Notes under the pieces: model-generated
Database searches by the model: none
The model's input: the letters and a program-made list of their open reading frames with translations, nothing else
What the model was told of the DNA's origin: nothing
Source: Sphaerodactylus townsendi
Taxonomy: Eukaryota
Assembly (NCBI RefSeq): GCF_021028975.2
Contig: NC_059432.1
Coordinates: forward strand, 82,770,001-82,834,000
Direction: 5' to 3'
Length of the DNA: 64,000 nucleotides
Shown here: positions 2,091-60,988 of the stretch, in pieces
Layout of the letters: each line of letters starts with the position of its first letter
How positions within the stretch are numbered: position 1 is the stretch's first letter
Position numbers and translations under genes: made by a program

Positions 2091-2186
2091 GCTCACAGTA
2101 AACAAGATGATGAATTTTGCAGCATTTGGCAATCATTGCAAGGCTCTGGAAAGTCTCAGCCTTCCCAGCAAAATAGACATGAGAAG
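2091..2186 (+). CDS. XRN1: XRN1 exon 32 (96 nt), first exon on the plus strand
   Basis: ttcccag|AHSKQDDEFCSIWQSLQGSGKSQPSQQNRHEK|gttagt, phase 0 acceptor. Confidence 0.93.
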
Positions 2187-5100
2187 GTTAGTGTTATATC
2201 CTTAGAGTGTATAACAATCAATAAAACAGTTGTGCAGAATATTGCAACTGAAAATAAATCTCATTTTTCAGGGTGGAATTGTGCCTCAGTATATAAAGTT
2301 AAATGCAGGTGGCCAGTTTTGTAAACCAGGCTTCAATGAGAGTAGCTTCAAAGGCCAGCAAAGAAAACAAGAGTCGTTTAAAAAGTGTAAGTACTGTTGT
2401 CACTTAGATTGTTTAGTTCTAGAAAGTAGTAATTCTTGATTTCTGGAGATACCTTCCAACTCTGACAGTGGTAATGCACAAGCAGGGCAAGATGTGATGC
2501 TTTTGCCAGCCTAATTTTTCTGCCAGTTTTCAAAGGGGCAGGACATTAATTGATTCTGATATTTTGACTGTTACTTGCAGTGTGATTTATTTATTTTTTT
2601 AATAATAGAATGTATTTTACCTCAACTCTTTTGGTGCTCTCCAACATCCTACATTTTATTCCATGATGTTGTTGAGATTCTCTGCTATAATTTTGTACCT
2701 AGATTTCATCCATTTTTATCAGACTTTCTGAAGGTGAAAGAACAGGTTTTGACAAAAAAAAGTTTTACCTATCTCGTCAGTTTTGAAACATCTGTCTTAG
2801 CTTGTTGGGCTAATATTGTGAACTTTGTTATAGCCAAAGAAGATACAAAAGGTCCAAGAAATGAAGATCAATCACATAAAATAATAAATAAACCAGTAAG
2901 TTTAATCATTTTTGCATGTTGTTTCTGGTAACTATAGGTATGTTAATTTCTTTTCCAGGTTACTTCAGTTATTATAATGAGAAGACATTAGATTACAGTG
3001 TTGGGGACTTTTATTTTCTAGAGCAGTGGTTCCCAATCTGGGATACATGTACCCTCAGGGGTATGTGCCAGAGCATTTGGGGGTATATTTTAAAAATACA
3101 TAAATTACATTAAAAATTACATTTTAAAAATTACGTTTAAAAACTAAGTTTTGCTAATATGGGAGTACAATTTCAGGAAAATGGGTTGCCTGGGGGTATA
3201 CGAATAAAAAAAGGTTTGGAACCACTGTTCTAGAGTCATGCTGAGTGATGTATGGGATGCAGAGCTTCCTGCCAGTCTTCATGGAATTGTGAGCTAGGAT
3301 CCAAACTACCCTGCAGTGCATGGCCAGGGGGGTCACACATTTATTTTGAGGGTAATTTTTGATAAGGCAAAGGGAAGGATGGGGAGCAATGTTTGCACTG
3401 GATGTCACAAGCCTTTTGAGATGCTCTTCCCATCTTGACTAAACTTCATATTGATATCTGCCTTTCTGCTCCTGTGTGTATTTAGGAAAACGACGCTTTT
3501 GGAATATAATTGCCTAGCATATCTAATGAAGTTGCAGTCACTTAAATTGCCCCAATTTTTTCTCTATTACTGATGACTGATTTTAGAAAATTAAAGGTAG
3601 AATTAACTATCAAGCGTTAAGCTCTATAAGCTACTACACTGTTGTAGTCTATTCATATCAAGGAAACTTAGTATGTTAAAAGGCCTGTACTGGTTCTACT
3701 TCTGCCTTTTAAAATGAATCTATTTTAGAAGCTGACACTGAGATGTTAAAACATAAGTAATCCTGTCTGTATCAGAATTTTCCAGGTGCTAATAAATGTA
3801 ATGTGAAGCTTTTAAAGAGAAATGAAGGTCCAAATATACCAGTAGAACAAAAGCCTGCTGTTGATAGTGCCAATATAAATGAGAAGGTACAAGTAAGTAT
3901 TAGCATGCACCTGAGCATATTCTTAGAAGAAAAAGAATTGACAAATGTATTTCACTGCATTTTAATAAGACAGAGTTCCCACCATGGTTTCTATTAAAGG
4001 ACATTTAATGGGACAGAATATCTGATCATGGATTTATAACTGAGCCCTTTGGCGGTAGGGTGGTCTATTAAATTTAATAAATAATAATAATAATAGCATC
4101 TTCTGTAGTTGAACCTTACTTGTTTTATCTCCCCTTTGGGATACCTTGACATGACCCAAAATTCCACTTAGTTGTCTTGTGTTCTTATTGGGCTCCTGGT
4201 TAGCACAGTCTTCCGTCTTTTCTGGCTGTATTGCAGTTAGCTCCATGCATAGTGAAGGTGCATGAATGAACTTGTTCCACACAGCACAATACATTGGAAA
4301 GGCCTTGAATGTGCTGGAGCTCAGTTTGTGAGCTGGAATGTCTGAATTAAAACTGGAGTTCATGGTCAAGTATGAAGGAGCTGGACTGCATATAAAGAGG
4401 TGGGAAAGAACATGTGTCTCCAGTCCCCTTTAATCTTAAATAGACTAAACTGCGCAGTTGAGTTTAAATCCTGAGGATTTCAGTGGCATTTGAACATCTT
4501 TAATCTTTTTTTGGATTGTGTCCTTTTAATTAGCATTTGTCTGCTTATGTTTCTTAGAATGGGTCTGAACTCGAAAATCTTTTGGCATCTTTGAAAATTT
4601 CCAAAGAAAATGAAGTGCAATCAACTTATTCCAAGGAGTCAGTACATGAAGAGCATCTGTCTCCTCAGTCTTTTGCTATGGTTTGTATGTTGTATTACCG
4701 TACATTAGCTGCAAAATTAACTTACTTGATTCCTGTTTATAATGTACTGAAGATTAATACAACAAATTTACATTTTGCTTCGTATTGTACTCAATTTCTG
4801 CTATCTATAAAAAACTGCCAGTGAGGTGTAGTGGTTAAGAACTCTGAACTCTGAACTAGAGAACCAGGTTTGATTTCCAACTTCTCCTCATGAGCAGCAG
4901 ACTTTTATCGGGTGAACTAGTTCTGTTTCCCTGCTCTTCCACATGAAGCCTGCTGGGTGACTGGGCTAGTCACAGTTTTCCAGAACTCTCTCAGCCCCAC
5001 CAAGGTGTCTGTTGTGGGGAGAGGAAGGGAAGGAGTTTGTAAGCCACTATGATGACGACGACGACAGAGAAAGGCAGGGTTAAATCCAAACTATTATTGT

Positions 5101-8100
5101 TGTTATTTAATTTCATTCTCTTCTTTCAACAGAAAGGAACCCAAATGCTCAAAGAAATTTTGAAGATAGATAGTTCTGACACAGCAGAAACTAAGCCAGT
5201 GATTAATGAAACTTCTACTTGTAAGCAGGATTCTTATGGACCTGCCTCACAACACAGACATACAAAAAAGATGGGTATGTACAAAAGCGTGGGTTTCTTT
5301 TGCTAGACAGTTTTTGGGTATGTGTGTTATATAGTTAAAAAATTAACACTGTCAGTGTTAATAATATATTTTTAACATCTTGTGATATTTTTGTGATTGA
5401 TGTCATCCCACGCTAATATTGTGTGTTCATTTTTATGTTATGTTATATTGATAGCTGCGTTCATGAACAAATCCCCAATCTCAGGAGGGCCTCAGAACAC
5501 ACAAGCCATGGAAGCTGGAGGCCACCCTCTTTTTGGACCACCAGGCTCATTATCTACACCAGTGTCTGAGCTTTCTCGTATCTGTTCTCTTGTTGGAATG
5601 TTGCAACCGGAGTTCTCATTCCTCAGAACTGTACAGGTAAGTTTATCTTTAAACAGTAACTCTGAAGAGATCTGAACAAAAATACCATCCTTTTCAAGCC
5701 AAGTAAGGGGAGGGCCTGGCTGCAGCCCAGCTAAGCAAGAGAGGGATGGTATGGTCTATGTAGAAGGAACGCACACAGACTCCCCCGGACTCCTGGACCG
5801 CCTTCTTCCAACACATTTGAGGGGCTTCTGCCACTACAAGGCATACGTTGCAGGAGCAGCCTTTCCCCTCAGCAGTCCCAGCCTGAGTTGCAAATGACGC
5901 CATCAGGTGAGTCTGGGATCATTGCTTCTCAATCCTTAGAAATCCACAGGTAGTCTTTATCTTTAAATAGTAGCTCTACAGAAATCTGAACAAATAAACC
6001 ATCATTTTCAAGCCCTAAGGACTCCAGGACAGATATATAGATATATAACTGTTAAGTACTGAGCTTTAATTGATATTGAGCTTTAACTGCATGAATCTTG
6101 GGGCTTGCAGTACCCAATCTTAGGAGCTAGTAAACATCTTCCCCAAACTTTAAATGTATTAGTTTGAAGGCTTCTTTCACTGCAGTCATTATCAGTGCTT
6201 TTAGTGTCTGTTCCTTGTACATAGTGGGAAATTTGATGCATTATCCAGAGTTAAAAGGCAAATGCAATGCATTTGTTTTGTTTGAGATGAGGACATCCTG
6301 GCATGTTTGGATACTCCTCTTCCCATCATCCTAGGAGGGAAAACCTAGATTTCTGTTTTCCGGGTCTCTTGTTCCTGGACTCTCCCAACTAGTCACAGTT
6401 CTCTCAGAGCTCTCAAGATGTCTGTTAGGAGAGGGAAAGGGAAGGCAATTGTTACCCACTTTGAGACTCCTTAAAGGTAGCGAGTGAAAAAGTGGGGTAT
6501 AAAAACCAACATTTTTTCTTCTAGTAAGCAAGGTCTCCACCCCACCCTCCACCCCCAGTCCAAAAGTCACACTGCACAGGCTACAGCAGTACTGGAGGCG
6601 AGCAAAGACTGGGCTTGCCAGTTTGCAGGAAAGAAGACACAGCAGCAGGTAGCAGCTCTGTGGAAAGTTGGTCTCAGTGAGAAAGTCTCTGTAGGAGCCA
6701 GACTGAAATAATGCAGCTGCATGAGGTTTTGCACTGCTGAGTGGGACATTTGGTATATAAGGAGTTGGAAATCAAGCGGTGTGGCAGCAACATTCTGTTC
6801 GGACTTGAAAGCCACTGTTCATGTTTCTGTTGCTTGGTTTTGATCTTGCTTTGGACTCGGCTCTGTTACACCCTCCTGTACCTGGTGCTTCAATTACATT
6901 AACCGGCTGAACTGGCTGTGAGCTGCCTCCACCTCTGTTGAGGCTCTTTCTACAACAACGTGTGGCTTTGTGACATCACAAATGTGCTAGAATGTCCTTT
7001 TCATCTCAAATGAAAACAGAACAAAGGTTCTTTTTGTTTGAGAACAAGAAGGACATCCTGGACCCATCTAAACTTTTCTGGATTTTTTGTCTCTGGAGTG
7101 GGGGAACCATCTGCTAACCAGGAAATAATTTGTGAAGTTATTCCTTTTTTTACCTTTCTGTTTCCTATAATATTACATATTTAAGTTTTTTCTCCTGACC
7201 AAGTTGTTTGAGAAGGTCAGAATGGAAGAAGGCACATGGCACATGGAGTAGTCTCTTTAGATTTGTGGAAGCCCCTGAACTGAAGAGGGTGGACATTCCT
7301 TTTCCCACTGGGAGGAGGGTGGGTGGAAACAGCAATCTAGTTCCTGCCTCCTAGGATGATGGGAAGAGGAGTACCCAAACATGCCAGGATATCCTCCTTG
7401 TTCTCAAACAAAAGGAATCTTCATTCAAAGTCCAACGTTCCATACCCTATCCCACCAATATACTAACTCTGTTCAATTGTGATTCTTTAGCTTGTGGTTT
7501 TGATAATATAAATAAAACATTGCATCTTGTTTTTCTTCTGCAGACAATGACAGTTTGTCAGGTAAAGCTGTCAAATGGTTTATTAATACATGGACCTCAG
7601 TGTCATTCTGAAAAAGAAGCCAAAGAGAAAGCTGCGCTTTTTGCTTTACAGCAGTTGGTGAGACCAGTGCTCAAAATGTTTTTGAAAAATCTTAATGTTA
7701 GTCTCCTTCTGTTTCATAAACATTCAACGTTTGTTCTTAAACAGAGCTCTATTGGGATGAACTTCCCTTTGCCTCCACCTCCAGTATTTCCAAACTACCA
7801 ACAGATGGGAGCCCTTGTGCCACCTGGATCCATTCCTCCAGTCTTCACTCAGCATGCTGGTAAGCATTTGACTGCTTTGTTCTCTATCACTGGAGGGGAG
7901 AGTATTGTGATTGAGTTACTCCTCCTGCTTGCTCCCCATGGAAGGCCATGCAAAAAAGGTAGAGACTTGATCTCTCTTCTGGGGTATCCAGCAGGTTTTT
8001 ACAAAAGCAAGAAATCCCACCCATCTAAGTTATTTCCCTAAAGACGTCAACTACAATATTCAGAATAAATGAGGCAATCCCACTTAAGTAAACAGAAGCA

Positions 8101-9303
8101 CGGGAAAGAGGCAAATGTTTTTCTTTCTAACTCTGCCATGGAAATCCTTGAGATTCTTAGAATGGATGCTCCTATAACCCTCTCACTTCATTCTTATTTG
8201 TCTCAAGGAAGGTTCCCTCAAATGAAAGGTGGATAAAAAGTTGGAACTGTGCAAATATCAGCTAATTTTTTTTGTTTGCAAGGGTATTTATTTTGTGGCT
8301 GGATGATTCTTTTAGGAGCTTCCTAACAACCTAAAATTGTAAGAGTCTTTTTACACCATCCATGGTTGCTATCTGCCTGTGGCAAATTACTGTTGTTCTG
8401 ACTTCAGTTCCAAATTCTTGAAGTCAGGGTTTTTATTAAGTATCTGGGTTTTTCCCAGTGACTAGGAGTCACTGTTGTTTGCATTGAACTGGAAAATGCC
8501 TAGCTTTGGCTCCTTCTGCACATGCAGAATAATGCACTTTCAATCCACTTTCAGTCTACTTTGCCGCTGGATTTTACTGTATAGCAAAATCCACTTGCAA
8601 AAAATTGTGAAAGTGGATTGAAAGTGAATTATTCTGCTTGTGCAGAAGGGGCCTTTATATTGCAGCGTGGCAGAGGATTACACTACACAGAACCATTTGC
8701 GATGAAAACGGAATCTTTCTTAAAAGTTTGTTCTTTTCACAGCTAATATGTTTCCTTCACCACCTCACGCATTTGGCCCAGTGCCATGGGCAGCACCAGT
8801 ACCTGTTCATGGCAAAGCTTACTATCCTGGCTCATGTCCTAGCAATATGCCACTAGCAGGAACAGTTCCAGTTGGCACACACAACCAGTTTATACCTTTG
8901 CAGGTAAGTTTGACTGTCGTTCTACAAGCGTATATAAATTATGTGTTTAAAAATGCTTCTCAAGATTTTGAAAAATAACAGTTAATATTTTTTTTTAAAG
9001 GTAACTAAAAAAAGGGCTGCTAGCAAGATGCATTTTGATTCTAAGGACTTCTCAGGTACAGTTCAAGATGTGCAATTAAAGAATGAACATCCAGTGTCTT
9101 CTGACACCACAAAACTGAATCCACAGGATGCTTCTTCAGACCCTTTAAGATGTCCTCAAGCTGCTCAACCCATAGTTTTTCAAGAGAAAATGGCTTCTGC
9201 AAGTCCCAGTGCATCTCATAAAAAATCAACACCAAATGTTTCCATCAAGCGAAAGCCGAGAAAATTGGCTGTCAATTTTGGGGTATCCAAATCTTCAGGA
9301 TAA
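2091..9303 (+). CDS. XRN1: XRN1 coding exons 32-42 (C-terminal 507 aa tail, ending RKLAVNFGVSKSSG*); spliced gene span, on the opposite strand to exons 1-31
   Basis: 11 GT-AG exons join in frame (1524 nt including TAA). They contain DDEFCSIWQSLQGSGK, HLSPQSFAM, ELSRICSLVGM, CQVKLSNGLLIHGPQCHSE, HNQFIPLQV and RKLAVNFG, as in vertebrate XRN1. Confidence 0.95.
2272..2386 (+). CDS. XRN1: XRN1 exon 33 (115 nt)
   Basis: GGIVPQYIK...KPGFNESSFKGQQRKQESFKK. Confidence 0.88.
2834..2895 (+). CDS. XRN1: XRN1 exon 34 (62 nt)
   Basis: KEDTKGPRNEDQSHKIINKP; phase 1 to 0 fits. Confidence 0.85.
3024..3227. mobile_element. hAT-Charlie-like MITE
   Basis: TIR cagtggttccc.../...ggaaccactg, TSD ttctagag. Confidence 0.85.
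3776..3886 (+). CDS. XRN1: XRN1 exon 35 (111 nt, symmetric phase 0, possible cassette exon)
   Basis: NFPGANKCNVKLLKRNEGPNIPVEQKPAVDSANINEK with AG/GT. Confidence 0.72.
4558..4680 (+). CDS. XRN1: XRN1 exon 36 (123 nt)
   Basis: NGSELENLLASLKISKENEVQ...EEHLSPQSFAM. Confidence 0.93.
4817..5105 (+). mobile_element. Squam3-like tRNA-derived SINE
   Basis: tRNA-like head ggtgtagtggttaag...ggtttgatttcc, body ctgggtgactgggctagtcacag, microsatellite tail. Confidence 0.8.
5133..5274 (+). CDS. XRN1: XRN1 exon 37 (142 nt)
   Basis: KGTQMLKEILKIDSSDT...HTKKM. Confidence 0.92.
5455..5636 (+). CDS. XRN1: XRN1 exon 38 (182 nt)
   Basis: AFMNKSP...STPVSELSRICSLVGMLQPEFSFLRTVQ. Confidence 0.93.
6272..7422 (+). 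mobile_element. Non-autonomous DIRS-like element (inverted terminal repeats plus internal complementary region) with a nested SINE fragment at ~6388-6523
   Basis: 6272-6360 is an inverted repeat of 7327-7415; 6989-7060 is complementary to both outer ends. Confidence 0.75.
7544..7657 (+). CDS. XRN1: XRN1 exon 39 (114 nt)
   Basis: TMTVCQVKLSNGLLIHGPQCHSEKEAKEKAALFALQQL. Confidence 0.95.
7745..7859 (+). CDS. XRN1: XRN1 exon 40 (115 nt)
   Basis: SSIGMNFPLPPPPVFPNYQQMGALVPPGSIPPVFTQHA. Confidence 0.92.
8508..8653. mobile_element. Palindromic MITE (PIF/Harbinger-like)
   Basis: ggctccttctgcacatgcagaataatgcac...tgcagaaggggcc; sister copies at 40425 and 60438. Confidence 0.75.
8743..8903 (+). CDS. 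XRN1: XRN1 exon 41 (161 nt)
   Basis: NMFPSPPHAFGPVPWAAPVPVHGK...HNQFIPLQ. Confidence 0.93.
9001..9303 (+). CDS. XRN1: XRN1 terminal coding exon 42
   Basis: VTKKRAASK...KRKPRKLAVNFGVSKSSG*, TAA at 9301-9303. Confidence 0.95.
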   Translation, partial: VTKKRAASKMHFDSKDFSGTVQDVQLKNEHPVSSDTTKLNPQDASSDPLRCPQAAQPIVFQEKMASASPSASHKKSTPNVSIKRKPRKLAVNFGVSKSSG

Positions 9304-15383: not shown

Positions 15384-16119
15384 ATTCAAGGGTATTTATT
15401 CAATTGAGGGCTCTTTGGGACAGTGGACAGTCTTTGACTCCAAAGCAAATTTGGCTTAATACAGAACCAAATATGGTTCTTTTAAAATAAACATATTTAG
15501 CCTAAAAGTATATCGGAGGAAGTAGGTGGGAGGGTAGAATAGCCAGTATGTGAAAAAATGGCAGGCAAAGTTTTTTTTTTTAATGGGACTATAGGGCTTC
15601 TTGAAGATGCTTGGCAGAAGGGGAAATGATTGAAGTGAACTGGAGAAATCCAAGTGTGAACTATACATACATACATAGTTGCCAATGCCTTAAAACAATC
15701 TAACGTTGTAAAATCTCATATGCCCCACTTCCTAGTAAAGAAGTAGCAACAGATAGTGTTGTTGGCCTGCAGAAACTGGATTATGAAAGTGTCAGTAAGG
15801 TTTTCCTGACCTAGATAGCCTACACCAGCTTGATTAGCTTGATCAGCACGTGACAGCTAATCCGCGTCAGCCCTAATTAGTACGCTAATGGAAGAACACC
15901 AACAAATTCCACAGCTGCTACCACCTCTGTTGGTCTCTTGCCTTGAAAATCCTACAGGGTCGCCATAAGTCCGCCGTGACTCGACAGCACTTCCCACCAC
16001 TCAGTATTATTAGGTTGCACATTTTAATTTATGTGAATGGGCATTTTGTTCAGCTCTTGCTGTGAATTCTGACACAAAACTGTAAAAAAAAAAACTGGGT
16101 GACCCCCCTGCTCAAGGAT

Positions 16120-16900
16120 TAAGAGGGCGGGCGGGTGCGGAGACGGTTACTAGGTGTGCCCGCCCGGTTCCAAATGGTGCCTAATAAACACAGAGCGGCC
16201 CTTCAGGATCAGGCGCTCCAAAGAGAAGCGAAAAATAGCGCTTGTTTTGTTTCCTCTCCCGGGCAGTTTCGAAAGGGCTGCACAGGCAGCACATTGTTGT
16301 GTTCCCCAATAGCCCTCCCCCCCCCTCCTCCTCCTCCTCCTCCCCGGGCGATTCAGTCCGCCGAAGGCCACTAGCCTTCTCTATTGGCTTTCTGGCTGGC
16401 AACACCCCCTGGCGCTGTGCGCGCCGAGTCCGGCCTCCGTCTGACGACGTCGATATATTTGGCAAGACACCTTTTCCACCCCTCCGCGTTGCAGTTTCGC
16501 CCCTGGTGGCGGGAATCGGAGCGGCTCATTGACCGGCCTCGGGGGCGGGGGCGGGGGCTGGGGCTGGGGCGCGCGGGCTGGCTGTCCATTTGGCTGGAGG
16601 CGAGGAGGCTCGAGGCAAGCTGTGGGGAAGGGGGCGCACGAGGGGCGGCGATGGGCATGAGGCTGAACGCCGCTGGAGCGCTCGAGGGAGATGCGGCTGC
16701 CCCCTCCGCCGCGGCTGCCCCGGCTAAGTACGTTCTCGGTGTAGACGTGGGAAGCACCGTCGTACGGTGCCATGTTTACGATAAAACGGCCGCGATCAAA
16801 GGCTCCAGTACCAAGCAGGTGAGCAAAGAAGCGGACCTATATTGATTTACCGGGTGGAGGTGGTGTCGTGTTTCTTTCGGAGCCCGCGGAACAATGTCTA
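16120..16900 (+). promoter_or_regulatory. CpG island / GK5 promoter
   Basis: High GC and CpG density, GC boxes (ggggcggggg near 16541-16555), inverted CCAAT (attgg near 16383); spans exon 1. Confidence 0.85.
16651..16818 (+). CDS. GK5: GK5 exon 1 (168 nt from first ATG)
   Basis: MGMRLNAAG...YVLGVDVGSTVVRCHVYDKTAAIKGSSTKQ|gtgagc. Confidence 0.9.
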
Positions 16901-19900
16901 ATAAAGCTGATCTCCAGTGGTTTTTTTGCCCTGCTTTTGAAAAGAATCCTGTGTTGGTTCTGTTTGGGGAAACTCTTCTTTCCAGGGGCCGGATCGGGAA
17001 GGGTGGCAGGTGTCCCCTCGAGGGGCAGTGACAGGGGCAGCAGCTGGAGGTGCAGTTACCTAAAAGGGGTGGCTCGTTCTGCAACACTAGCGGCCAGTTG
17101 ACGTTTTTAAGCTGCTGCTACCGGTAAGAGGTAGGGGAGACTCAGTTGCCCAGCAGCGATGGCGCCTTCTGCAGCGCAAAATGCCTCCTCCCCATTAGGC
17201 TGTTGCAAGGAGACTCAGTTGCCCTGGCCTACAGCATGACTCTTCTGGCACAGACACTCTATTCCTCTGTTAGTTTGGTGCTAGGAGGTGGGAGGGGAGA
17301 GGGATACCTGTGGCCTCAGAGTGGAGGCATAGCCCTTTGTAAGGCAAAAGTTGAGTAAGGGAAAAGAAGGTGGAGGTAAAGTTTTATGAGGAGATGTTCA
17401 AAGATGTCAAGTTGAACAAGTTCTATGCAGGGGAAGACAGAGGCCCCCAGGTAACCTTCCTTGGCGTGGCTAATCTCCCTCCCGCCCAGGTCCCCTATGC
17501 TCTTCCACCTACAGGACCTTCAAATTCCTTGTCTTTTTGTCCCCTTCTTTCAAGGACCAAACATTGACACTGGCTGAGATAGGTTTGGGGCCTGCAAGAT
17601 GCGTGGGAGGTTTGGGGGGAGGGCTTAGAGTGCACTCTAAATAATCATGGAGGAAGAAGAGTTTTGAGAGCTGGTGATCATTAACTGTGTAGGTAAGCTC
17701 CCCTTCCTTGTGCTCTGCTGAGGCACTCCAAGCGCTAGAGCAGCCTGGAGTCAAATGGGGTGGAGGGAAAGATGACAGACCTCTACTCCCTCCTCCCCAG
17801 CTTTAAAACTGAGAGCTGCGTTATGCTTGGCTTTGCCAAAGGCTGTGAGTAGACATGCCCCCTCATCTGTTAGGCTTGGCCTTCCCCAAAGACTTTGATT
17901 TTACACCTTGGGAAAGAGGGTGACAAGAACAGAGGGGCTGTTGTGCTCTACATGCCATCAGTTACTTCCAGAAGTTAACAGCCTTGCTAAGGTCATGCAA
18001 ACTGAGGGCTGTGGCTTCCTTCATTGAGTCAGTCCATCATATGTTGGGCCTCCCTGTTTTCCTACTGTCTTCAACATTTCCTAGCATTATTGTCTTTTCC
18101 TGTGACCAATTAAATACAGTAGCTTCAGTTTAGTCATTTTAGCTTCTAGTAAAGTACGTAAATCCAAATTTACACCCTGGTCAGCATATTAGTTCGGATT
18201 ATAAATTAGGCCAGCTTTCTATAACCTATGCTATGTTGTGCAGTTTTTGAAACTAAGCTGTAGTTGGATGGAGAGGCACCTGGGCAAGCTGACCAGCCTC
18301 TGATCTTAGCTGCAAACTGCTTTGATTTCAAATATTTCGAGATTAGCTTCCCTGTAATTAAAGTTTACAATACTGTACAATGAAGCTAACAATCTGAACT
18401 TTTAAAAAACATAGTGTCACCACAGTGCCTTCGGACCAAATACCAAATCCAGTTTTACATTCTTTACAAAAAAGTTTTAACCTAAAAGCAAACTAATGAC
18501 AGTTAAAACAAATATTTTAATCCAAAAGGAATTAATCTAGTTATATATGAATGTATATATTGTTTTACTTGAAATATTTATATCTCCATTTTCTTCTGAA
18601 CATTGCAAGACCCCAGGCAAGTTCCACTTGCTATTTCCATATCACTTTCCTGATCTAAATAGCTTCCAGTGTTGTTATTAGAACTGTGGTAATTTATGTA
18701 TCTAAATTGCTTTTGTAGTTGTTTCTACCGCTGGCTAGTAACAGTTTTCGAATGCTCTTTTGAAGTGTTTTTTTTTAAGCATTGGGAGATCATAACGCCA
18801 GATTTACAGTGTAATCAAGAAAGAGGGGGGCAAAAGAACTCAGAAGGCAGCATGATCCCAACACCAACATAAATGCCATTTGTGCCAGTGCTGGGCCCTT
18901 AAGCCAGTGCTAGGGGCAGATGTGTCAGCAACACACCTCTGATGCAGGAGACCATGCTGGTGCCAAAGGGGATGTTCCCAGAGTCAGCATGCTGCAGTGG
19001 TTAAGGGCAGGTGCACTCTAATCTGGAGAACTGGATTTGATCCCCAGCTCTGCCACTTGAGCTGTGGAAGCTTACTTGATGAACCAGATTAGCTTGTGCA
19101 CTCCAACACATGCCAGCTGGGTGACTGGCTAGTCACAGTTCTTCAGAGCTCTCACAGGCCCACCTACCTCACAGGGTGTTTGTTGTGAGGGGAAGAGAAA
19201 GGAGCTTGTGAACCCCTTTGAGCCTCCTTACAGGAGAGAAAGGGGGGATATAAATCCAAACTCCTCTTCTTCTTCCTCTTCCTCCCAGGGGCGGGGCTGA
19301 CATTAGTTGGCTTCCTGAGCCCGTTCAGCCTGGGAACAACCCAGATTGCCAGCCTATTGTGCTGCATCGGCCACAGAGGAAAGAGGAGCATCACTGGGCC
19401 ACAGCATAGCAAAATTCTTAGGAAGAGGTGCAGCTGCATGTGGTTGACCCCTCCTTGGCTGTGGGGCATCTACCTCCTCTCAGAATTGCACTGCCCATCT
19501 ATTTATACTTTTCTGTTATTCTGTTATTTAGTACAACCCAAGAAGAATTATCAAGATTCAGTGGAATGTGTTGTTGATTCAAATAATTTCTTCCCCAAGC
19601 AGAAGTCTCTAATTTGTACCAAAGCAATATCATATTTCACACGAATCTGATCCCAAACTTTATGTGGCCTGCAACTTTATTTGGGATTTGAGTTTCTCTA
19701 AGAAAAGGTTTTTCTCGTTCTTTCAGTTGCCAAAGTTGATATTGAGAACACAGTGTAATGTTGTCTGCATAGCTTGCTAGAATTTAACTCTTCCTTCTGT
19801 GGGAGAATTCAGATGTGTCAAGGCAAAAGCTTAGTAGTTATCACTTATTGTAAGCATTTACATGCTACGAGGCCAATTCACAGTGCCAGCAATCTCATAG

Positions 19901-22126
19901 GATTGCTCACAGGCCAGCTCCTGGGAGTCTATGGACTCACAAGTTGCATGAACCCATTCTACTTGTGAAATGGCATAAATTGTGACAACTGCTTGTACAG
20001 GCTCCTCATAGAGGTAAACATATCCATACAGTCAGGGTCCAGACTGGACCCAGGACCCTCTAGTGCAGTGGTGGTGAATCTTTGGCACTCCAGATGTTAT
20101 GGACTACAATTCCCATCAGCCAATTGGCCATGCTGTCAGGGGCTGATGGGATGTAGTCCTGCAGCCCTCTGGAGACCTGGGGAACCCCACCATGTAACTC
20201 TAGTGGGCCCATTTGCTCCCAATCCCTAATTACACCAATATCTACGGACAGTAGGACATGTTAACAGGGTTCTGCTGCCACGAAGCTACATGACTCCCCT
20301 GCACCAGCCTGAGTGCCCCTACGCTGGCATCTGTTCCTCTTTGTGAGGCACTGGTGACAGTGATAGTGGTGTAGGGGTCATGCTGCATCCAATGTAGTTT
20401 CAACCCCCTCCCCCCCTTAAGTGTTTAAAAAATATGAGAGGTAAGATTATCTGATACAGGAAGCACTTTTTCTCTTTAGCCAAAAGGCTAACAGGTAAAC
20501 TTTGTTGTAAGTTCTAGGGAAGAGCTTTTACCACCTGTTTGATTCCTTTACCCTTTGGATTAGTTTGTTGATGAAGGGTAAGCCTGCTCTTTGGTTATAG
20601 TTTTCCCCTTATTTTAAGCAACTTTTAAGCAACCATATTCAGTGGAGAAAAGCAGGTCAAAACCTTACATGTACCAGCATCCTGTGGGGTAATGACTGCA
20701 CATGAGTTTCTTATTAACTAGATAATGGGTGAATCCCCACTGGGAAAATAAACCGGGTTCCCCCTGGTTCCAGGACCAGGACAGAGTCGAGTTAGGCATG
20801 AAAGCAGTGGGGAGTCCTTGCCCAAACCGGGATTTTTAGGGTGAGTATCCTGGGATATTTTGACCGAGGGGATTCACCCAGTGTTACTTCTCAATATGTG
20901 ATAAATACAGTAGGCATTTTGTAATATGGGAAATGACATTGACTGTAAGGCTGGCATGGCAGTAACTCTTGTTTTGTTTTGACCTATTTGATGAGCATGT
21001 GGTTTCTGTTGATTAGGTTGAAGTACTTCATCCTCAGCCTGGATGGGTTGAACTGGACCCTGAAGGCCTGTGGACACAGTTTGTCGATGTGGTAAAAGAG
21101 GCAGTTCAAGGTAACCATATAACTAAACTCTAGCACCTTATGCAGAAGGTACTGACTGAGGCACATTTTTGTACCTTTCCTTTTATTCAGCCCTCTTCCT
21201 GTTGTGAATCCCAAAAAGGGGGGGTGCCTGAGGTTGAGGAATTCATGTTAACTAAAGGTTGTGTTACATTGTTAATTGCTATGAGAAGAGAAAGGGGGAC
21301 AATACTCAGCTCTCTACTTCTTAGGGCAGTGGAAGTGCTTCTTAACCCTTGATACGAAATAATTGTGACCTTTTATGCTAGACACAGAATGCTGTATAGA
21401 ACATGCTTATGTCAGCCTGTATGTAAAAAGTATGTTGTTGTATCAGGTGAATAGAAGGAGAACTCATCAAGGTGCTTTTTCCCATTGGACATGTTATCAA
21501 ATTCTAGTGATAGCAATTTGTTGTTGCAGTTGGGAAAGGAAGGGAAAGGAGCTTGTAAGCCACTTTGAGTCTCCTTACAGGAAAGAAAGGTGGGATATAA
21601 ATCCAAACTCTTCTCTTCTTCTACTTCAACAAGTTATCTGGAATCTTCAGTCAGTAAAATAACTAGAAACCTATTAGGATTTTGCATAGCGATGTGTCTA
21701 TCATACAAATAAACCTTTTGTGTGATTTATGCTTAACTACTGGTAGTTGAGTTTCCTCAATTCTCACTTTATGTCTTCTAAAATACTCCCAAGACTACAA
21801 TCCTAAGCACATTTATAGGCAAACTACTCATTGTGAAGCTTTGCTTTTTAAATGTAAAGAAACCTTTGGTGGCAGTGAACTGAGTGGGGAAAGGTAGAGA
21901 ACTCTTTTCCAGCTGGCACCATTCTGCTAAAATATCTCTCCTGAACTAACATGCATTCAATTCTGTGTGACTAAGAATGAATGAACAGTTTGTGGTATTA
22001 CATAAGTTCTGTGACGCTCACTGCTTATTGTTCCTTTTTTTATCTTCTAGCTGCAGGAATTAAAATGAGTCAGATTTCTTCAATGGGATTTGCGACACAC
22101 CGTGCAACTTTCCTTACATGGAACCG
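16651..22126 (+). CDS. GK5: Glycerol kinase 5 (FGGY family), exons 1-3 only; remainder not found in window
   Basis: YVLGVDVGSTVVRCHVYD / VEVLHPQPGWVELDPEGLWTQFVDVVKEAVQ / AAGIKMSQISSMGFATHRATFLTWN match GK5. Syntenic immediately downstream of the XRN1 3' end. Confidence 0.93.
17940..18150 (-). mobile_element. RTE/BovB-like LINE 3' fragment
   Basis: cttccttcattgagtcagtccatc...cttcaacatttcctagcattattgtcttttcc is typical of a reverse-complemented RTE-BovB 3' end. Confidence 0.6.
18981..19277 (+). mobile_element. Squam3-like SINE
   Basis: gcagtggttaagggcag...ctaatctggagaac...cacctacctcacagggtg...atataaatccaaactc, (ctt)n tail. Confidence 0.8.
20065..20180. mobile_element. hAT MITE (family of 38405-38552), degraded
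   Basis: ccagatgttatggactacaattcccatcagcc...ggctgatgggatgtagtcc hairpin. Confidence 0.65.
21017..21110 (+). CDS. GK5: GK5 exon 2 (94 nt)
   Basis: VEVLHPQPGWVELDPEGLWTQFVDVVKEAVQ. Confidence 0.93.
21520..21625 (+). mobile_element. Squam3-like SINE 3' fragment
   Basis: ggaagggaaaggagcttgtaagccactttgagtctccttacagg...tataaatccaaactcttc. Confidence 0.7.
22051..22126 (+). CDS. GK5: GK5 exon 3 (76 nt)
   Basis: AGIKMSQISSMGFATHRATFLTWN, gtaagt donor. Confidence 0.92.
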
Positions 22127-24220: not shown

Positions 24221-24399
24221 ATCAGCCTCTGTCGGCATGGCCAATTAGCCCATGCTGGTAGAAACTGATAGAGATATGGACTAATCTGGAAGAATGCGAT
24301 TCCCCTGCACTAGAAGAATGTCCCCAAAACACTTGTCAAAATACTGCCCTCCATTTTCCCAAGCACCCGGCTTATACATTCATAAAATTCACCTCAATC

Positions 24400-42700: not shown

Positions 42701-45700
42701 AAAGGGTCGTTTGACCCCCAAAGGGGTCCCGACCCCCAGGTTGAGAACCACTGTTCTAAAATGGAAGAAGCCATTACCAATAGACCCTTTAATCTTTTGA
42801 GCTCTACTGAGCCCTGTCCCAAGTCTGTGAGGATCAGTGAACCTTCAAAAATATGTGAAACTGCAGAATTAGAGGAAAACGGTGCTCTCCTCTTGCATAA
42901 GATCGGGAGCTAATGGAAACAAGAGTGCAGGCAAGAGGTAGGAGATTTCTGCAGGTCCCCTACTGCCACTACATCTTGCCCACAACCCACATCATTCCCA
43001 AGGCAGCAACCCTAAAGAGCTGCTGCGGGGAGCAGCAGACTGTACTGCCATGGGAAGAGGCAATCAGCAGAGACCCCTTCTGTGGGATCTGCTGTGTTCA
43101 CAGTGGTTTGGATTCAGTGCCTTTCATAACGAATAAACATTGAAAAACATTCAGTTATTTTGCTTACAGCAACCTGCCAGACAAGATGAAAGGAAGGGTA
43201 TTAGGTATTGAAGAATGCATTCTCTGGACATTTAAGAACTCTACTAATCAATACCGTCTTTCAGAAAACATAAAGGGAAATGACAGCTTACAACACTTGA
43301 TTCCCATTCTTCTCAGAACAGCTTATTATTATGATTTATGCTGTACTGGATCCACTGGTGCATGAATAAGTGCTTTTAAAAACTGATGGTAGTTAAATTC
43401 CATCAACATCTAATGAAATTAAGAGTCGGTGAAGCAATGGATTGCACCCTTTACTTTGGAAAATTAATACTTAAGAACCAGCATGGAGTAACAGTTAAGA
43501 GTGCTGGAATAGAATCTGGAAGGCTAAGGTTCAAATCCCCTCTTTGCCATGCAAGCTTGCGAGGTAACCTTGGGCCAGTAACATACTCTCAGTCTAACCT
43601 ACCACACAGGGTTATTGTGAGGATAAAACAAAGGCAATGAGAACAAAGTAAACCACTTTGTGTTTCCACGGGGGAGAAAGGCAGGGTATAAATGATCTAA
43701 CTATTGCGGTCTTACCTTGTATGACACCTTTCTATGGAAGAGAACTTCTCTGGCCATGGCGATAGGTATTGGAACTCTGTATCTTTGTCATACGTGCACA
43801 TCAAGCACTCACTGTGCCTATTTCTTTGCCTTTCTTCCTCTGTCAACAACATACTGCAAAATTCCATTGCCTCTAGCAATTGTCTCTAACAAAAGCATTT
43901 GACAGACACAGTGAACATTAATGATCATGACAACTCTACTTAAAGAAAGACAACAAAATATTTTCCAATACTGTCTTTTTTGGGTTGCCGCTTCTAACAG
44001 AAGGGCTAGACTTCCTATTCAGGCACTGTTTGAAATAAATTTCACTCAAAATTAAGATCCACTAATTTCAAAGGGACTAATCTCAGCAGACCCAACACTT
44101 ACGATCTTTGAGCCTTGGGGGATATTTGGAAAAAGATGTGATATCACATATTTCCCCTTTTTTCACTGCCAAGTTGAGGATACTTTGGTTAATATAACCA
44201 TTATTAAGGGTGGTAAGGAAAAAGCACACAAGGTGAAAACAGCTGCCCCCAGTCTCATGCCATGATTGAAACAATCAGGAGTGTTACATGTACAGACTCC
44301 AAGTGTAATTAGTTCTGTCTGAATGACAACTGAAAATTGTCCTTGCCCTTGGAAATGACTGGGAGTGTGCCTCACGTTCACCCTTCCTCCCCCTTCTTTT
44401 ATCATCCCCCTTCAACAAGAATGAACTAGGAAATGAATAATGTTCAGGGTGAACTATTTTAATTGTAAATTCTCTGTTGGACATTATTCCTCTTTTCTTA
44501 GTGGTGGAGGGAAAATGACAGAAGCAGTATGATAAAAGTTAGGGTGTCTGAAACTCATTTTCAATTTCAATATGAGTGCAGTTAAGGAATAAACAGATCC
44601 AAGGTACAACAGAACTATGCATTTTGTTTATTAGTATTGGTGGGGTGGGGACAGCATTTTACCTAGATCTCTGAATATCCATGAAGATTTGCAGAGAAGA
44701 GGTAAGGTGTCATGTATATATTGATTCCTCAGTAGAATATAAGCATTACTGATAATGAACACAACTCTTTATGCAGCAAGAATTTAAAAAGCAGAACATT
44801 CTAAGACTGCACCAATTTCTATTTACAAGATTATATATTTACAGTTGCCTAAGTTTAGTTAAAAATCTGATCAAAAATTTCACCTCATTAATAAATGGAA
44901 TTAACACTACAGCTTCCCATTCTTGTTGCTTTCCATTTAGATCCGTTTTAAATTCTGTTGGATAATATTCAATAATGGGAGACTCTTCACTGATCATCAA
45001 ATGCTAGAAAATACAAAAGGAACAACTCAGACCTAACCACATTGTACTAAAGTAATGCACATTTCAGTTTTCAACAGACAGGTTAGAACACAGTACTATT
45101 CTATTTTATTTATTATTTCTCCTATACACAGTCTATTTATTATTTTATTTATTATTTCTCCTTATAAACACAGTCTATTCAATCCCCTTTCAGCTTTTAG
45201 GAATTCAGAGCATTTACAGAGTGGTTACAGCAGTTACAGCAGCTTAAATTTTCTTAATGGCTTAGTGGAACAGCTAATACAGATAAGTTGTTAAAAAAAA
45301 CTTGTGAATGAGCTGGGAGTGTGCATCTACTTTGCCTGCCGGAACCGGAACTCCCCAATGTTCCATTATGCTTCACTCCCTTATAAGCATTCCAGAAATT
45401 GAACAAGTCACTATTTTAATTGAGAAAGTGATTGCCATATAAAGAAAATAAAACGCATGATAGCAAAATAAAAGGACCCTCACAACTCCATAAAAGAATG
45501 GCAGCATTAACTGAACTTAATGACAGGTCTCTTAAAATATTACAGCTTACCTGGTAGCATTTAGGTAGCAGATCTTTACTACCTGCTGGAAGTACTGCAA
45601 GAAGCTGTTCAAATGGCATGAATGGTTTTCCTAAATCGAAGTGAATCTTCAGTTTACTGATATTGCGGATATCTGATAAATAAGGTGCATAATGATAGGG

Positions 45701-57700: not shown

Positions 57701-60700
57701 TTTGACCATTTCCAGCTGAGTACAACTTGAATATCTTTCTATAACCAAAGTTGACAAACCACAACATACTATAGTCTGGACTACAGAGCACCGTCAAGGG
57801 GCAACAGAAATGGATGGCCTCGCCTTGCTGAAGCAGTGTCAGACTTTATACCTTTGTGTTCCTTTTCTACAGTTGTTGGTATTTATAGCTTACCAGTTTG
57901 ATGTTTAACTATTATCACACTGATTGTGAAATGCAGTCATTACCACCACCAGTGCTCTGTCAACAGAATTTATTTACTTGGAACAGTAATACACTCACAA
58001 CAAGCCACATATGGCTCTTCTGAGGACCACTTCCCAACACAGCACCCACCCAATGTTTTGGAAAGGAAGGCAAAGCTCATGGTTTACAGTACAGCTTGAG
58101 GTTGGCAGTAGTTCCTGCCCTGAAATAGTTGCCACTGGAGGAACTGGAAGACCAGTAAACTGTGAGCCTCACTGAGATTCAGGGGTCTCATGCTAGGGAT
58201 GGAAGTAAAGCAAGCTGGCCACAGCACACTTATGTTATTTGCCTTTCTGATTAGTCCACTTGCTCTCATCCAGGAACCTGGGCATTCTCTGTTGCCTGAG
58301 CTATTGTGACTCATGCTGAGGGGAGACAGTGAACGCAGAGACAGAAACTCCTTCCATCAGTCCAGATACACAAAGGTTTAACAGTTGTGGGGAGAGACAA
58401 CTCAACACGCACATCAGTATTCTGGTGATTTAAAATGTTATCGTTATATATTTATCATAAATACATATCTCACTTTATTATACATGTGAGTTTGACAGGA
58501 CGGTGTGCGAGCCATACAGTAATCCTGTGGCTCATTACATGTAGCACTTCCCTGACTACCAAGTATCAGAAACAGACTTCAAACCAGGACATGCTATTCT
58601 GGTTTGTAGCAAAAGCACTAACCACAGTTAACAGATTAAATTAGCATGTTAATAGCACAGTTACAGATTAAAATATTAACTGTTGCCAAGAATAAGAAAC
58701 TGAAAGGGAAACAGAAACAGAACAGAAGAAGGAGTGAGCAAGCCCACAATTTGTTTCAAATCATCTAAACAACCATTTGGAGAATCACTTGAATCAAACC
58801 TTTTTTAACCCCTGTACCCCTTGGAAACCTATTTCCCTAAGATTGTACCCCCTTATTCTTCTGTGGAAGGAGATTTTCCTGTATCTTCCATCAGTAACCA
58901 AATAAGAAAAGTTGTTAAGATGAAAGCTCTTAGTTGCTGCTGTGTTAGTGGAATGATGAAATATTTGGCCCTGATCTGTAAGGGGCATGAATTCCCAGAG
59001 TTCTTGGAGAATACACTCTCACATTTGTAGGCAGCACAGTTTGACATTCATGATCTCCTAATCTTTTCTTAATTTCTTGCAGAATGAAGTTCTCGCAGGA
59101 TGCCAAAGACTACAAAACTATGCCAGTTTTGCTGATCTTGAATTGTATTCATTTGGATCATTCTGAGAGGTGAGTTTGTTTGTTTGTTTGTTTATATTCC
59201 ATCCTCACCAGCAGGGCTCAGAGCGGCAACAACACAGAATCCATACACAGTAATAAATAACAACAGTACAGCGATTAAGACAGCAAAACCAACCACAGAT
59301 GGCAAAAAATCCCCCTCTTTTACTGCACCCATGGGAGACCAACAATAGTGAGGTCAGGCTGGCTGGCTAGATGGGAATGCCTGGTGGAAAAACTCCATCT
59401 TACAGGCCCTATGGAACTAATTCAAGTCCTGCAGGGCCCTGATCTCACTGGGGAGCTTATTCCACCAGGTACAGACCAGGGCTGAAAAGGCCCTGGCCCT
59501 TGTAAATGTCAAAACAGCATGTGAAATAGTAGGCTAGAAGGATCAGATCTGAAGTGCAACTTTAGACAGTATTTAATTGATTGGACTCAGGCTTTCATTT
59601 CTAGAGGAAATAGCCTTGATTCTTGGCATTGTGTTGCATAAGTTTGGAACTCTTGAGTATTTTGCGCAGAAATAATTCTTGAATTTGCTCTACTTGTTTT
59701 AAATGCCTGAATCTAGACTGGGATCCCATACAAAATTTGTGGGGTTATTTTGGCTTTAAAAACCTGGGCCAGAGCTGGGACAGATTGGTTGCCCTTGCCG
59801 TATAAAAATTGGGCAACTCCTGCTAGTGAGCATTTAGCTGCTGTTGTCACTTCAGATCCATGGATAGACCACTTAAAACTGTGCTGAAAAGAAGTACTTA
59901 AACCCCCAAGTTAAGGAATTAGAAAGTCTTTTTCATCTACTTCCTCTACCTTCCACTTACCTACAAAACCTGGATCTCTTGTATAACTGGTGTGTTTGCA
60001 AGTTGAACAGAAAACAGAGAGATGCAAAATAAATGTATTTTGTTAGAAGAAAAGAAAGCAGAACTTTTATTCAGCTACAAGGGGACTCTTGTTTTGGAAA
60101 AATAAACGAAAACATATTTAGACCGTTGCCAATATGAACACGTTTATCCATTTCTGCTAGTTTATAAGCTCTCTGCATATTAAAGTCAAATTACAACGTT
60201 ACACAAGAGACCCAGGTAACTTTATATCAACATTTTGCTGCTACTGTTTTAAAATAAATGCAACCACCAGAATCTGCAATTAGCAGCACAGGAATGACAG
60301 AAGGCGAGGATGGCAGTGCTCTTTTCCTCTCAAAATTACCTCCTCACTTTTCTCGCAGATCACCCAGCTACGAAGGACCTGAACGCACAGTCCAGCCAAG
60401 GGGAGATAAAAGGACCTGCTTCTACCTGCGAACCTCAAGCCCCTTCCGCACATGCAGAATAATGCACTTTGCCGCTGTGTGGAATAGCAAAATCCACTTG
60501 CAAACAATTGTGAAAGTGTGCTGAAAGTACATTATTCTGCGTGTGCGGAAGGGGCCTCAGAGTCATTCAGCACAGCAATCGTTATAAATATGCTATCCAG
60601 AAATGCCAGCCTGAATGTGCGTCTTCGCCGAAACTGGGTCAATCACACACGCAAGGAACGGCTTGGTATTGCACAAGGAAAGTCGTTCCCCCCTGCCTCG

Positions 60701-60988
60701 GATGCACCCAGGTAGAGTCTCCCAAGCGCGGGGTGGCAGCCGCGTCTTAGCAAACGGACCGGGCCCCTCGACCAGCCACGGTGGGAGAAAGAAAATGCCG
60801 AGGACGATGCACAGTGCGGGCAGAAATGCCGGGGACGATACACAATGCAAGCAGCCCCTCCAGATATAACCAGAAAGTGGAGAGGGACGGAAGAATCCCC
60901 CGGGCACGCTCACCTGATGCTCCTTCAGCACCTGGCTGAGGCAGGGGTACCGCTCCGAGATCCACCGGTAGAATTTGGGCACCCCCAT
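27507..60988 (-). CDS. XRN1: XRN1 5'-3' exoribonuclease 1, coding exons 1-31 (N-terminal 1228 aa: catalytic domain plus PAZ/KOW/winged-helix/SH3-like region); spliced gene span
   Basis: 31 GT-AG exons join in frame (3684 nt) from [15 protein letters not shown] to [11 protein letters not shown]. Catalytic motifs [40 protein letters not shown] and GNDFIP are intact. Confidence 0.97.
28310..28379 (-). CDS. XRN1: XRN1 exon 30 (70 nt)
   Basis: [22 protein letters not shown]. Confidence 0.95.
28836..28968 (-). CDS. XRN1: XRN1 exon 29 (133 nt)
   Basis: [44 protein letters not shown]. Confidence 0.95.
29829..29885 (-). CDS. XRN1: XRN1 exon 28 (57 nt)
   Basis: [19 protein letters not shown]. Confidence 0.93.
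31077..31212 (-). CDS. XRN1: XRN1 exon 27 (136 nt)
   Basis: [45 protein letters not shown]. Confidence 0.95.
33717..33806 (-). CDS. XRN1: XRN1 exon 26 (90 nt)
   Basis: [29 protein letters not shown]. Confidence 0.95.
34732..34878 (-). CDS. XRN1: XRN1 exon 25 (147 nt)
   Basis: [48 protein letters not shown]. Confidence 0.95.
35857..35972 (-). CDS. XRN1: XRN1 exon 24 (116 nt)
   Basis: [38 protein letters not shown]. Confidence 0.95.
36568..36666 (-). CDS. XRN1: XRN1 exon 23 (99 nt)
   Basis: [33 protein letters not shown]. Confidence 0.95.
37058..37171 (-). CDS. XRN1: XRN1 exon 22 (114 nt)
   Basis: [38 protein letters not shown]. Confidence 0.95.
38405..38552. mobile_element. Near-perfect palindromic hAT MITE (148 bp)
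   Basis: caggggtagggaacctgcggctctccagatgttcaggaactacaattcccatcagcc and its reverse complement; TSD atctagac. Confidence 0.9.
38595..38757 (-). CDS. XRN1: XRN1 exon 21 (163 nt)
   Basis: [27 protein letters not shown]...[17 protein letters not shown]. Confidence 0.95.
39898..40029 (-). CDS. XRN1: XRN1 exon 20 (132 nt)
   Basis: [43 protein letters not shown]. Confidence 0.93.
40425..40565. mobile_element. Palindromic MITE (PIF/Harbinger-like)
   Basis: ggccccttccgcacacgcaaaataatgc...gcattattctgcatgtgtggaatgagcc. Confidence 0.75.
40772..40875 (-). CDS. XRN1: XRN1 exon 19 (104 nt)
   Basis: [34 protein letters not shown]. Confidence 0.95.
41400..41860 (-). mobile_element. L2-like LINE 3' fragment
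   Basis: (tttg)n tail then aaggcctggtggaacagctatgtcttgcaggccctg...aaaagccctggctct; related copy at 59175-59505. Confidence 0.6.
42170..42268 (-). CDS. XRN1: XRN1 exon 18 (99 nt)
   Basis: [33 protein letters not shown]. Confidence 0.93.
42358..42478 (-). CDS. XRN1: XRN1 exon 17 (121 nt)
   Basis: [40 protein letters not shown]. Confidence 0.93.
42568..42753 (+). mobile_element. SPIN/URR1-type non-autonomous hAT MITE (second copy)
   Basis: Same sequence family as 1753-1918; TSD ttctaaaa. Confidence 0.88.
43476..43700 (+). mobile_element. Older tRNA-derived SINE (Squam3/MIR-like)
   Basis: ggttcaaatccc, ccttgggccagt...acctaccacacagggttattgtgaggataaa. Confidence 0.6.
43716..43885 (-). CDS. XRN1: XRN1 exon 16 (170 nt)
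   Basis: RQLLEAME...[13 protein letters not shown]...SPWPEKF. Confidence 0.93.
44884..45003 (-). CDS. XRN1: XRN1 exon 15 (120 nt)
   Basis: [40 protein letters not shown]. Confidence 0.95.
45551..45707 (-). CDS. XRN1: XRN1 exon 14 (157 nt)
   Basis: [15 protein letters not shown]...[26 protein letters not shown]. Confidence 0.95.
45965..46054 (-). CDS. XRN1: XRN1 exon 13 (90 nt)
   Basis: [29 protein letters not shown]. Confidence 0.95.
46314..46419 (-). CDS. XRN1: XRN1 exon 12 (106 nt)
   Basis: [34 protein letters not shown]. Confidence 0.95.
47065..47134 (-). CDS. XRN1: XRN1 exon 11 (70 nt)
   Basis: [23 protein letters not shown]; phases fit both neighbours. Confidence 0.85.
47865..48146. 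mobile_element. hAT MITE with a nested second element (~47897-48053)
   Basis: TIR cagtgatggcgaacct, TSD ccctatca; same family as 62532-63137. Confidence 0.75.
49173..49301 (-). CDS. XRN1: XRN1 exon 10 (129 nt)
   Basis: [43 protein letters not shown]. Confidence 0.92.
49435..50000. mobile_element. Non-autonomous hAT element with two internal hairpins
   Basis: TSD acagtcac (49427-49434, 50001-50008); hairpins at ~49520-49686 and ~49729-49869. Confidence 0.8.
50875..50942 (-). CDS. XRN1: XRN1 exon 9 (68 nt)
   Basis: [22 protein letters not shown]. Confidence 0.95.
51739..51907 (-). CDS. XRN1: XRN1 exon 8 (169 nt)
   Basis: [42 protein letters not shown]. Confidence 0.95.
51997..52084 (-). CDS. 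XRN1: XRN1 exon 7 (88 nt)
   Basis: [29 protein letters not shown]. Confidence 0.95.
52220..52302 (-). CDS. XRN1: XRN1 exon 6 (83 nt)
   Basis: [27 protein letters not shown]. Confidence 0.95.
52727..52837 (-). CDS. XRN1: XRN1 exon 5 (111 nt)
   Basis: [37 protein letters not shown]. Confidence 0.95.
52921..53030 (-). CDS. XRN1: XRN1 exon 4 (110 nt)
   Basis: [36 protein letters not shown]. Confidence 0.95.
53190..53297. repeat. Degenerate (GATAG)n microsatellite
   Basis: ggataggataggatagaataagatgggatag. Confidence 0.8.
53343..53819. mobile_element. Harbinger-like non-autonomous DNA element with internal hairpin
   Basis: TIR ggctgtttctacac / gtgcagaaacggcc; internal inverted repeat gttcacctacctctcctccctg / cagggaggagaggtaggtgaac. 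Confidence 0.7.
54000..54200 (+). mobile_element. Sauria SINE (Squam1)-like fragment
   Basis: gctgactcacttccatccttctgaggccagtaaaacttgagtgcccagcttgctgg. Confidence 0.65.
55151..55248 (-). CDS. XRN1: XRN1 exon 3 (98 nt)
   Basis: [32 protein letters not shown]. Confidence 0.95.
56237..56469 (-). CDS. XRN1: XRN1 exon 2 (233 nt)
   Basis: [25 protein letters not shown]...[14 protein letters not shown]. Confidence 0.97.
59175..59505 (-). mobile_element. L2-like LINE 3' fragment
   Basis: (tttg)n tail then gcctggtggaaaaactccatcttacaggccct...aaggccctggccct. Confidence 0.6.
60438..60556. mobile_element. Palindromic MITE (PIF/Harbinger-like)
   Basis: gccccttccgcacatgcagaataatgcac...attattctgcgtgtgcggaaggggcc. 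Confidence 0.75.

Follow-up and report, generated by a model that had tools for sequence, protein, structure and literature searches.

XRN1 is split between opposite strands in a gecko genome assembly, probably through an orientation error at hairpin-forming repeats

In a 64-kb stretch of the Sphaerodactylus townsendi genome assembly, analyzed here at its full length and referred to below as the window, the coding sequence of XRN1 occupies both strands: as mapped with a full-length vertebrate protein, it runs along the minus strand from position 60988 to 27507 and is then taken up again on the plus strand from 2091 to 9300. This layout raises the question of whether the gecko carries XRN1 in two opposed pieces, or whether a block of DNA has been turned around and, if so, whether that happened in the chromosome or in the assembly.

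Results

The two parts of XRN1 were delimited by tblastn of the window with P0011, a 1725-aa rodent XRN1 protein that was the best full-length match, in a representative library, of a query from XRN1 exon 2 (78 aa, XRN_N). The minus strand carries residues 1–1223 of P0011 in colinear order (60988 to 27504) and the plus strand residues 1218–1724 (2076 to 9297), likewise colinear, such that residues 1–1724 are each covered once and in order, with the strand switch at about residue 1223 and with no duplicates of XRN1 exons detected within the window. The splice junctions were refined against the reference, with AG/GT sites and an open frame required, and phases and junction codons were checked exon by exon. 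The 5′ part (27507–60988, minus strand) comprises 30 mapped coding exons with a combined length of 3621 nt, the first opening with the start codon (60988) and the last being exon 31 (27507–27732), which ends in phase 0 at its donor. The 3′ part (2091–9300, plus strand) comprises 11 coding exons (2091–2186, 2272–2386, 2834–2895, 3776–3886, 4558–4680, 5133–5274, 5455–5636, 7544–7657, 7745–7859, 8743–8903, and 9001–9300) with a combined length of 1521 nt; it starts in phase 0 and ends with a stop codon at 9298–9300. All 41 mapped exons are flanked by AG/GT sites and lack in-frame or junction stops, and the two halves sum to 1713 codons, the continuity of the gene being judged from phase arithmetic and junction codons with the exons taken singly rather than from a joined spliced protein.

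The original prediction that XRN1 is split onto opposite strands is thereby confirmed, as are the two splice sites on which it turned: the exon 31 donor at 27507 on the minus strand is present in phase 0 as ...TTT GTT CCA ACT CGA followed by GTAAGT, and the exon 32 acceptor at 2091 on the plus strand is present in phase 0 as ...ttccttcccag followed by GCT CAC AGT AAA CAA GAT GAT GAA TTT TGC. In the whole mRNA, the exon 31 sequence expected ahead of the 2091 acceptor is ...GTTCCAACTCGA. The accompanying count of exons 1–31 on the minus strand and 32–42 on the plus strand, with none lost or duplicated, is borne out for the 11 plus-strand exons and by the lack of double matches, but the minus-strand exons found number 30. 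The extra minus-strand exon of that count (about 22 codons, expected somewhere between 49166 and 46419) was searched for and not found; the direct join at this position is in frame, so that the two counts diverge by no more than a single small exon of poor conservation. Likewise, the uninterrupted open reading frame of about 1735 aa that had been proposed holds insofar as the frames are open and the phases compatible, with the length amended to 1713 codons.

The identity of the gene is clear from its domains. Single exons give Pfam matches to XRN_N (5.9e-34), XRN1_D2_D3 (5.4e-12), and SH3_12 (1.7e-9), and the XRN_N catalytic, D2/D3, and SH3-like domains follow one another in the order expected for XRN1, all of them within the 5′ part. 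Judged by this domain order, together with the colinear full-length match that includes the C-terminal third, the split gene is the XRN1 orthologue.

The two halves of XRN1 are separated, as had also been predicted, by the 5′ end of a glycerol-kinase-family gene, of which exons 1–3 lie on the plus strand at 16651–16818, 21017–21110, and 22051–22126, and which breaks off after exon 3 at a GTAAGT donor at 22127. Open frames and AG/GT sites are present in 3/3 of these exons. Exon 2 matches glycerol kinases (E = 9e-4 for PDB and E = 1.5e-4 for TIGR01311), exons 1 and 2 give weak colinear matches to FGGY_N (positions 1–28 and 32–60), and the gene begins with the N terminus of the FGGY/glycerol-kinase fold. 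GK5 is the usual co-oriented downstream neighbor of XRN1 in amniotes, and it is on the strength of this conserved neighborhood that we regard the GK5-like gene as a putative GK5. Its exon 3 and XRN1 exon 31 face each other on opposite strands at a distance of 5.4 kb.

The ancestral order of these exons was examined with the ORF around exon 31 as the query, which matches only genomic ORFs of other species that read from exon 31 into the intron. The nearest of these species shares 88% identity with the window in exon 31, on a 1.8-kb contig with introns that are not alignable; exact look-ups of the window's own ORFs found no entry in that collection. In another reptile, represented by four contigs of up to 28 kb that carry an exon 31 ORF (L002–L005), exons 19–31 match the minus strand of the window from 40046 down to 27502; after exon 31 there is a 1.4-kb intron 31, and the next exons follow on the same contig strand, where they match the plus strand of the window at 2088–2194 (exon 32), 2314–2397 (exon 33), and 3772–3889 (exon 35). 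XRN1 is thus colinear in this reptile across exons 19–35, and the gecko layout is derived. Mammalian proteins and one trout XRN1 protein are also continuous across the exon 31/32 boundary; in the search for full-length squamate XRN1 proteins, made with the rodent representative, only mammals were among the matches listed, and two human isoforms among them were left aside. The prediction that a single inversion explains the layout is supported, with one break in XRN1 intron 31, the other in GK5-like intron 3, and the uninverted order found in the contigs of the other reptile.

Intron 31 of the colinear reptile also provides a marker for the far end of the inverted block. When this intron was compared with the window as a means of mapping the breakpoint, only exons and one 115-nt element aligned, the latter being a conserved non-coding element on the exon 32 side of XRN1 intron 31 (482–593 on the plus strand, matching L002:10897–11011 at 72% over 115 nt). 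Since the element has stayed on the exon 32 side in the gecko, the break in intron 31 must fall between exon 31 and the element, which puts the left end of the inverted block to the left of 482. No repeat common to positions 1–2100 and the junction region was found, from which we conclude that the left breakpoint is probably outside the window; long inverted repeats linking the left flank with the junction were likewise not found within the window.

The other end of the block is marked by a candidate junction at 23739–24418, where GK5 intron 3 and XRN1 intron 31, each represented by its 5′ part, run head-on into each other. The junction is built of chained hairpin repeats at 23739–24017 (arms of 24–35 nt, 80–96% complementary), one unit of a high-copy family of about 200 bp at 24013–24220, which recurs nearby in both orientations, and short fragments extending up to 24308–24418. 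These repeats are high-copy and hairpin-rich, of a kind that an assembler cannot orient; an Rfam scan of the junction returned only sub-threshold hairpin look-alikes, with the hammerhead absent. To the right follow a single-copy island (24419–24862) and an older high-copy repeat cluster inside XRN1 intron 31 (24862–26138), which includes a 1.1-kb imperfect palindrome (24954–26030, 77.6% self-complementary). Because the island has this same repeat cluster on its right both in other samples of the same species and in a relative, it most likely belongs to XRN1 intron 31. The number of N bases in the 64-kb window is 0. A plain scaffold flip between gapped contigs therefore does not fit the join, and any orientation error would sit inside a contig or a closed gap.

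Reads placed on 21980–27900 were drawn from two DNA samples of organism A, identified as the same species by a difference from the window of only about 1 letter in 1800, and from one DNA sample and one RNA run of organism C, a close relative that is 2–3% diverged. The summed word depth is that of single-copy DNA at 21980–23762, 24418–24862, and 26138–27900, and rises to hundreds of thousands to millions between these stretches. Each of the two organism A samples has a contig that stops at 23762, a second one of 445 nt that spans precisely 24418–24862, and a further one that begins at 26138. Neither sample contains a contig that bridges or contradicts the junction, these being short-read contigs. 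In organism C, the left contig follows the window to 23743 and continues into at least 132 nt of unrelated sequence, while a 1980-nt contig follows the window from 24828 down to 24308 and continues into 1402 nt of single-copy DNA with no match anywhere in 21980–27900. At the older cluster (24.86–26.2 kb), the contigs of organism C stop where those of organism A do, so that in either species it is flanked on both sides by contig ends. We read these data as showing that the window and the relative differ at 23743–24308/24418, which is the junction, and that the relative does not have it; since its contigs leave the window for other DNA, the join is specific either to the gecko lineage or to the assembly. 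Of the read mapping that had been proposed across the junction and the left flank, the junction was covered here, with short-read contigs, which break off in the repeats without spanning the join or conflicting with it.

The same reads bear on the possibility that the window contains parts of two XRN1 copies, a plus-strand copy whose exons 1–31 would lie beyond the left edge of the window and a minus-strand copy that is inverted and truncated. The depths of the flanks on the GK5 side and the exon 31 side are 67 and 79 in one organism A sample and 26 and 30 in the other. These near-equal values indicate that there is no duplication in the reads and that exon 31 is single-copy in the reads of both animals, contrary to the second complete XRN1 copy that had been raised as the alternative to a split gene. 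Moreover, no exon occurs twice in the window, and a second copy would still leave GK5 cut after exon 3. Two copies are therefore the least probable of the explanations considered, with only a minimal chance of being correct.

A more radical explanation is that XRN1 is truly split, and that its mRNA is rebuilt by trans-splicing of separately transcribed halves, in the manner of Drosophila mod(mdg4). Both halves are intact, and a phase-0 donor on one and a phase-0 acceptor on the other are compatible with such a reaction. However, the split is not conserved, with the distant relative colinear and the close relative lacking the junction, and GK5 would need the same rescue. Nor was a promoter signal for a separate transcript of the 3′ half seen in the 2.1 kb that precede exon 32: in a scan of the window, CpG islands were present only at the XRN1 promoter and exon 1 (60601–61100) and at the GK5-like promoter and exon 1 (16101–17100), with none in positions 1–2090. 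In the RNA run of organism C, exon 31 is covered about 5x, GK5 exon 3 about 1x, and the introns adjoining exon 31 not at all, depths that are mute on the exon 31–32 splice, as loose ends at 27507 are crowded out by repeat reads. That the gecko XRN1 gene is truly divided and reassembled at the RNA level is highly improbable on this evidence, and the same very low probability attaches to the specific case of an inversion that is real and homozygous, with full-length XRN1 and GK5 mRNAs restored by opposite-strand trans-splicing.

Discussion

The results presented here demonstrate that the order of the XRN1–GK5 block is inverted in the window, that the exons of both genes are intact, that the junction lies in hairpin repeats and that a close relative lacks it; as the cause, we infer the assembler. 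XRN1 is probably whole in the animal, and its split an assembly orientation error. Several observations count in favor of an artefact: two genes are cut and yet 44 exons are flawless; independent short-read contigs end exactly at the junction repeats; the flank depths are about equal; and the join is absent from the close relative, with the ancestral order being colinear. The flipped block would extend from left of 482 to about 23.8–24.3 kb, about 25 kb in all, and would contain the 3′ part of XRN1 intron 31, XRN1 exons 32–42, a spacer, GK5-like exons 1–3, and the 5′ part of GK5 intron 3. The assembler would have set it down in reversed orientation, flanked by two copies of repeats that are high-copy and hairpin-forming; as such repeats look alike in both orientations, the assembler would have been unable to orient the unique DNA between the copies. 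Against an artefact, the join contains no gap, the same-species contigs end at the assembled repeat boundaries (23762 and 24418), in agreement with the local sequence, and no contradicting read was seen among the short-read contigs.

The main rival explanation is a real, young inversion of about 25–30 kb, present in the species or in an individual and perhaps heterozygous, that would have arisen by breakage or recombination at copies of a hairpin transposon. The sequence is contiguous and free of gaps at the junction, contigs from two further conspecific animals break off at the repeat boundaries present in the assembly, and the junction is missing from a relative that is 2–3% diverged, as expected of a young event; the high-copy, hairpin-rich repeats at the junction could themselves drive recombination. 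Such an inversion would cut off the non-catalytic C-terminal third of XRN1 and break the GK5-like gene on that chromosome. Because exons 1–31 keep all of the catalytic and structured domains, the truncated enzyme might be tolerated, at least in the heterozygous state. However, the inversion would put two genes out of action together, including one that encodes a conserved core decay enzyme, and neither half of XRN1 has decayed; furthermore, no read bridges the junction. Sequence alone cannot separate a flip by the assembler from a real inversion, but with these points considered together a real inversion appears unlikely, while retaining an appreciable chance of being the correct explanation. 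The ranking of the original prediction, with a mis-oriented contig likeliest, followed by an inversion and then by trans-splicing, is the one that we have reached as well, albeit from data in which no read or contig bridges or breaks the junction.

The consequences differ markedly between these explanations. If the split is an artefact, the assembly mis-orients blocks of tens of kilobases at hairpin repeats, breaking the gene models of XRN1 and GK5 and creating false evolutionary breakpoints, and such sites should be marked before the assembly is annotated or used in synteny analyses. A real inversion would amount to a natural truncation of XRN1, with loss of the C-terminal third, the region that binds decapping factors, and would be an example of hairpin transposons reshaping a gecko genome. 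Trans-splicing, if true, would be a major surprise, as no core housekeeping gene of vertebrates would have been known to be restored in this way before.

Comparison with known systems places the locus in context. In Drosophila, mod(mdg4) and lola are trans-spliced split genes that, like the gecko XRN1, have coding parts on opposite strands with compatible splice phases; in those genes, however, the arrangement is conserved, the 3′ modules have promoters of their own, and chimeric mRNAs have been demonstrated, whereas the gecko split is unshared by relatives and no promoter signal was seen in the 2.1 kb ahead of exon 32. Inversions mediated by transposable elements arise from recombination between inverted copies, and the gecko junction similarly lies in young, high-copy, hairpin-forming repeats, although here the partner copy of the repeat, like the second breakpoint, probably lies outside the window, and two genes would be broken if the event were real. 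Known local orientation errors in draft vertebrate assemblies, at repeats that the assembler cannot orient, also take the form of a flip of tens of kilobases relative to related species that ends in palindromic, high-copy repeats and cuts genes that are otherwise perfect; the gecko join differs in having neither an N gap nor a contradicting read, such that the error here is one that we infer. Finally, the vertebrate XRN1–GK5 locus shares with the gecko its domain order, its exon order, and its exon 31/32 boundary (...SLFVPT(R/Q) on the exon 31 side and ...DDEFC.IWQSLQGSGK on the exon 32 side), and in both the XRN1 stop codon is followed by a co-oriented glycerol-kinase-family gene, the difference being that in the gecko window exons 32–42 and GK5 exons 1–3 together occupy the strand opposite to that of exons 1–31.

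Read depth beside the junction

Immediately to the right of the candidate junction interval (23739-24418), where intron 3 of the GK5-like gene meets XRN1 intron 31 head-on, lies a single-copy island (24418-24862) that most likely belongs to XRN1 intron 31. Beside this island (24356-24417), contig depth falls to zero at 24369 and 24407 in both same-species samples, whereas the relative, which is 2-3% diverged, covers both positions. The island contig itself is present at approximately 0.63 of the depth of its flanks in both same-species samples (46 versus 67-79 in one and 18 versus 26-30 in the other). AT-rich coverage bias or a polymorphism adjoining the junction could explain the depth shortfall at 24356-24417 and 24418-24862.

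Repeats within and to the right of the junction

The left part of the junction interval (23739-24017) consists of chained hairpin repeats from a high-copy family, with a period of 118-138 nt and arms of 24-35 nt that are 80-96% complementary. An Rfam search of this chain returned miRNA-like hairpin matches, all of them below threshold. Further right, a 52-nt piece (24218-24269), one among the repeat fragments crowded into 24200-24330, matches a small palindrome that lies in a different intron of XRN1 (38452-38505), with 88% identity in one orientation and 81% in the other.

Beyond the island, an imperfect 1.1-kb palindrome (24954-26030; self-complementarity 77.6%) is composed of ~200-bp units that alternate in orientation and all belong to a single family of very high copy number. 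Members of this family were located at about 24013-24220, 24955-25134, 25084-25279, 25321-25515, 25750-25892 and 25901-26030. RNA reads from the relative cover the palindrome on both strands at about 40-200x.

Intron 31 and a conserved XRN1 exon

The left flank and the remainder of the window have a sole repeat in common, a 150-nt sequence present as two direct copies with 92% identity; XRN1 intron 31 holds the first (1753-1903) and an upstream intron the second (42568-42720). Intron 31 also contains a 115-nt non-coding element (482-593, plus strand) that is 72% conserved in a distant reptile (L002:10897-11011), outside which that reptile's intron 31 is unalignable to the window.

Among the plus-strand exons of XRN1, that at 7544-7657, encoding TMTVCQVKLSNGLLIHGPQCHSEKEAKEKAALFALQQL, weakly resembles the double-stranded RNA-binding motif (PF00035) over the C-terminal half of that motif, with a below-threshold E value of 0.0087. 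Its identity to a distant vertebrate representative is 89%, a conservation far above that of the surrounding exons.
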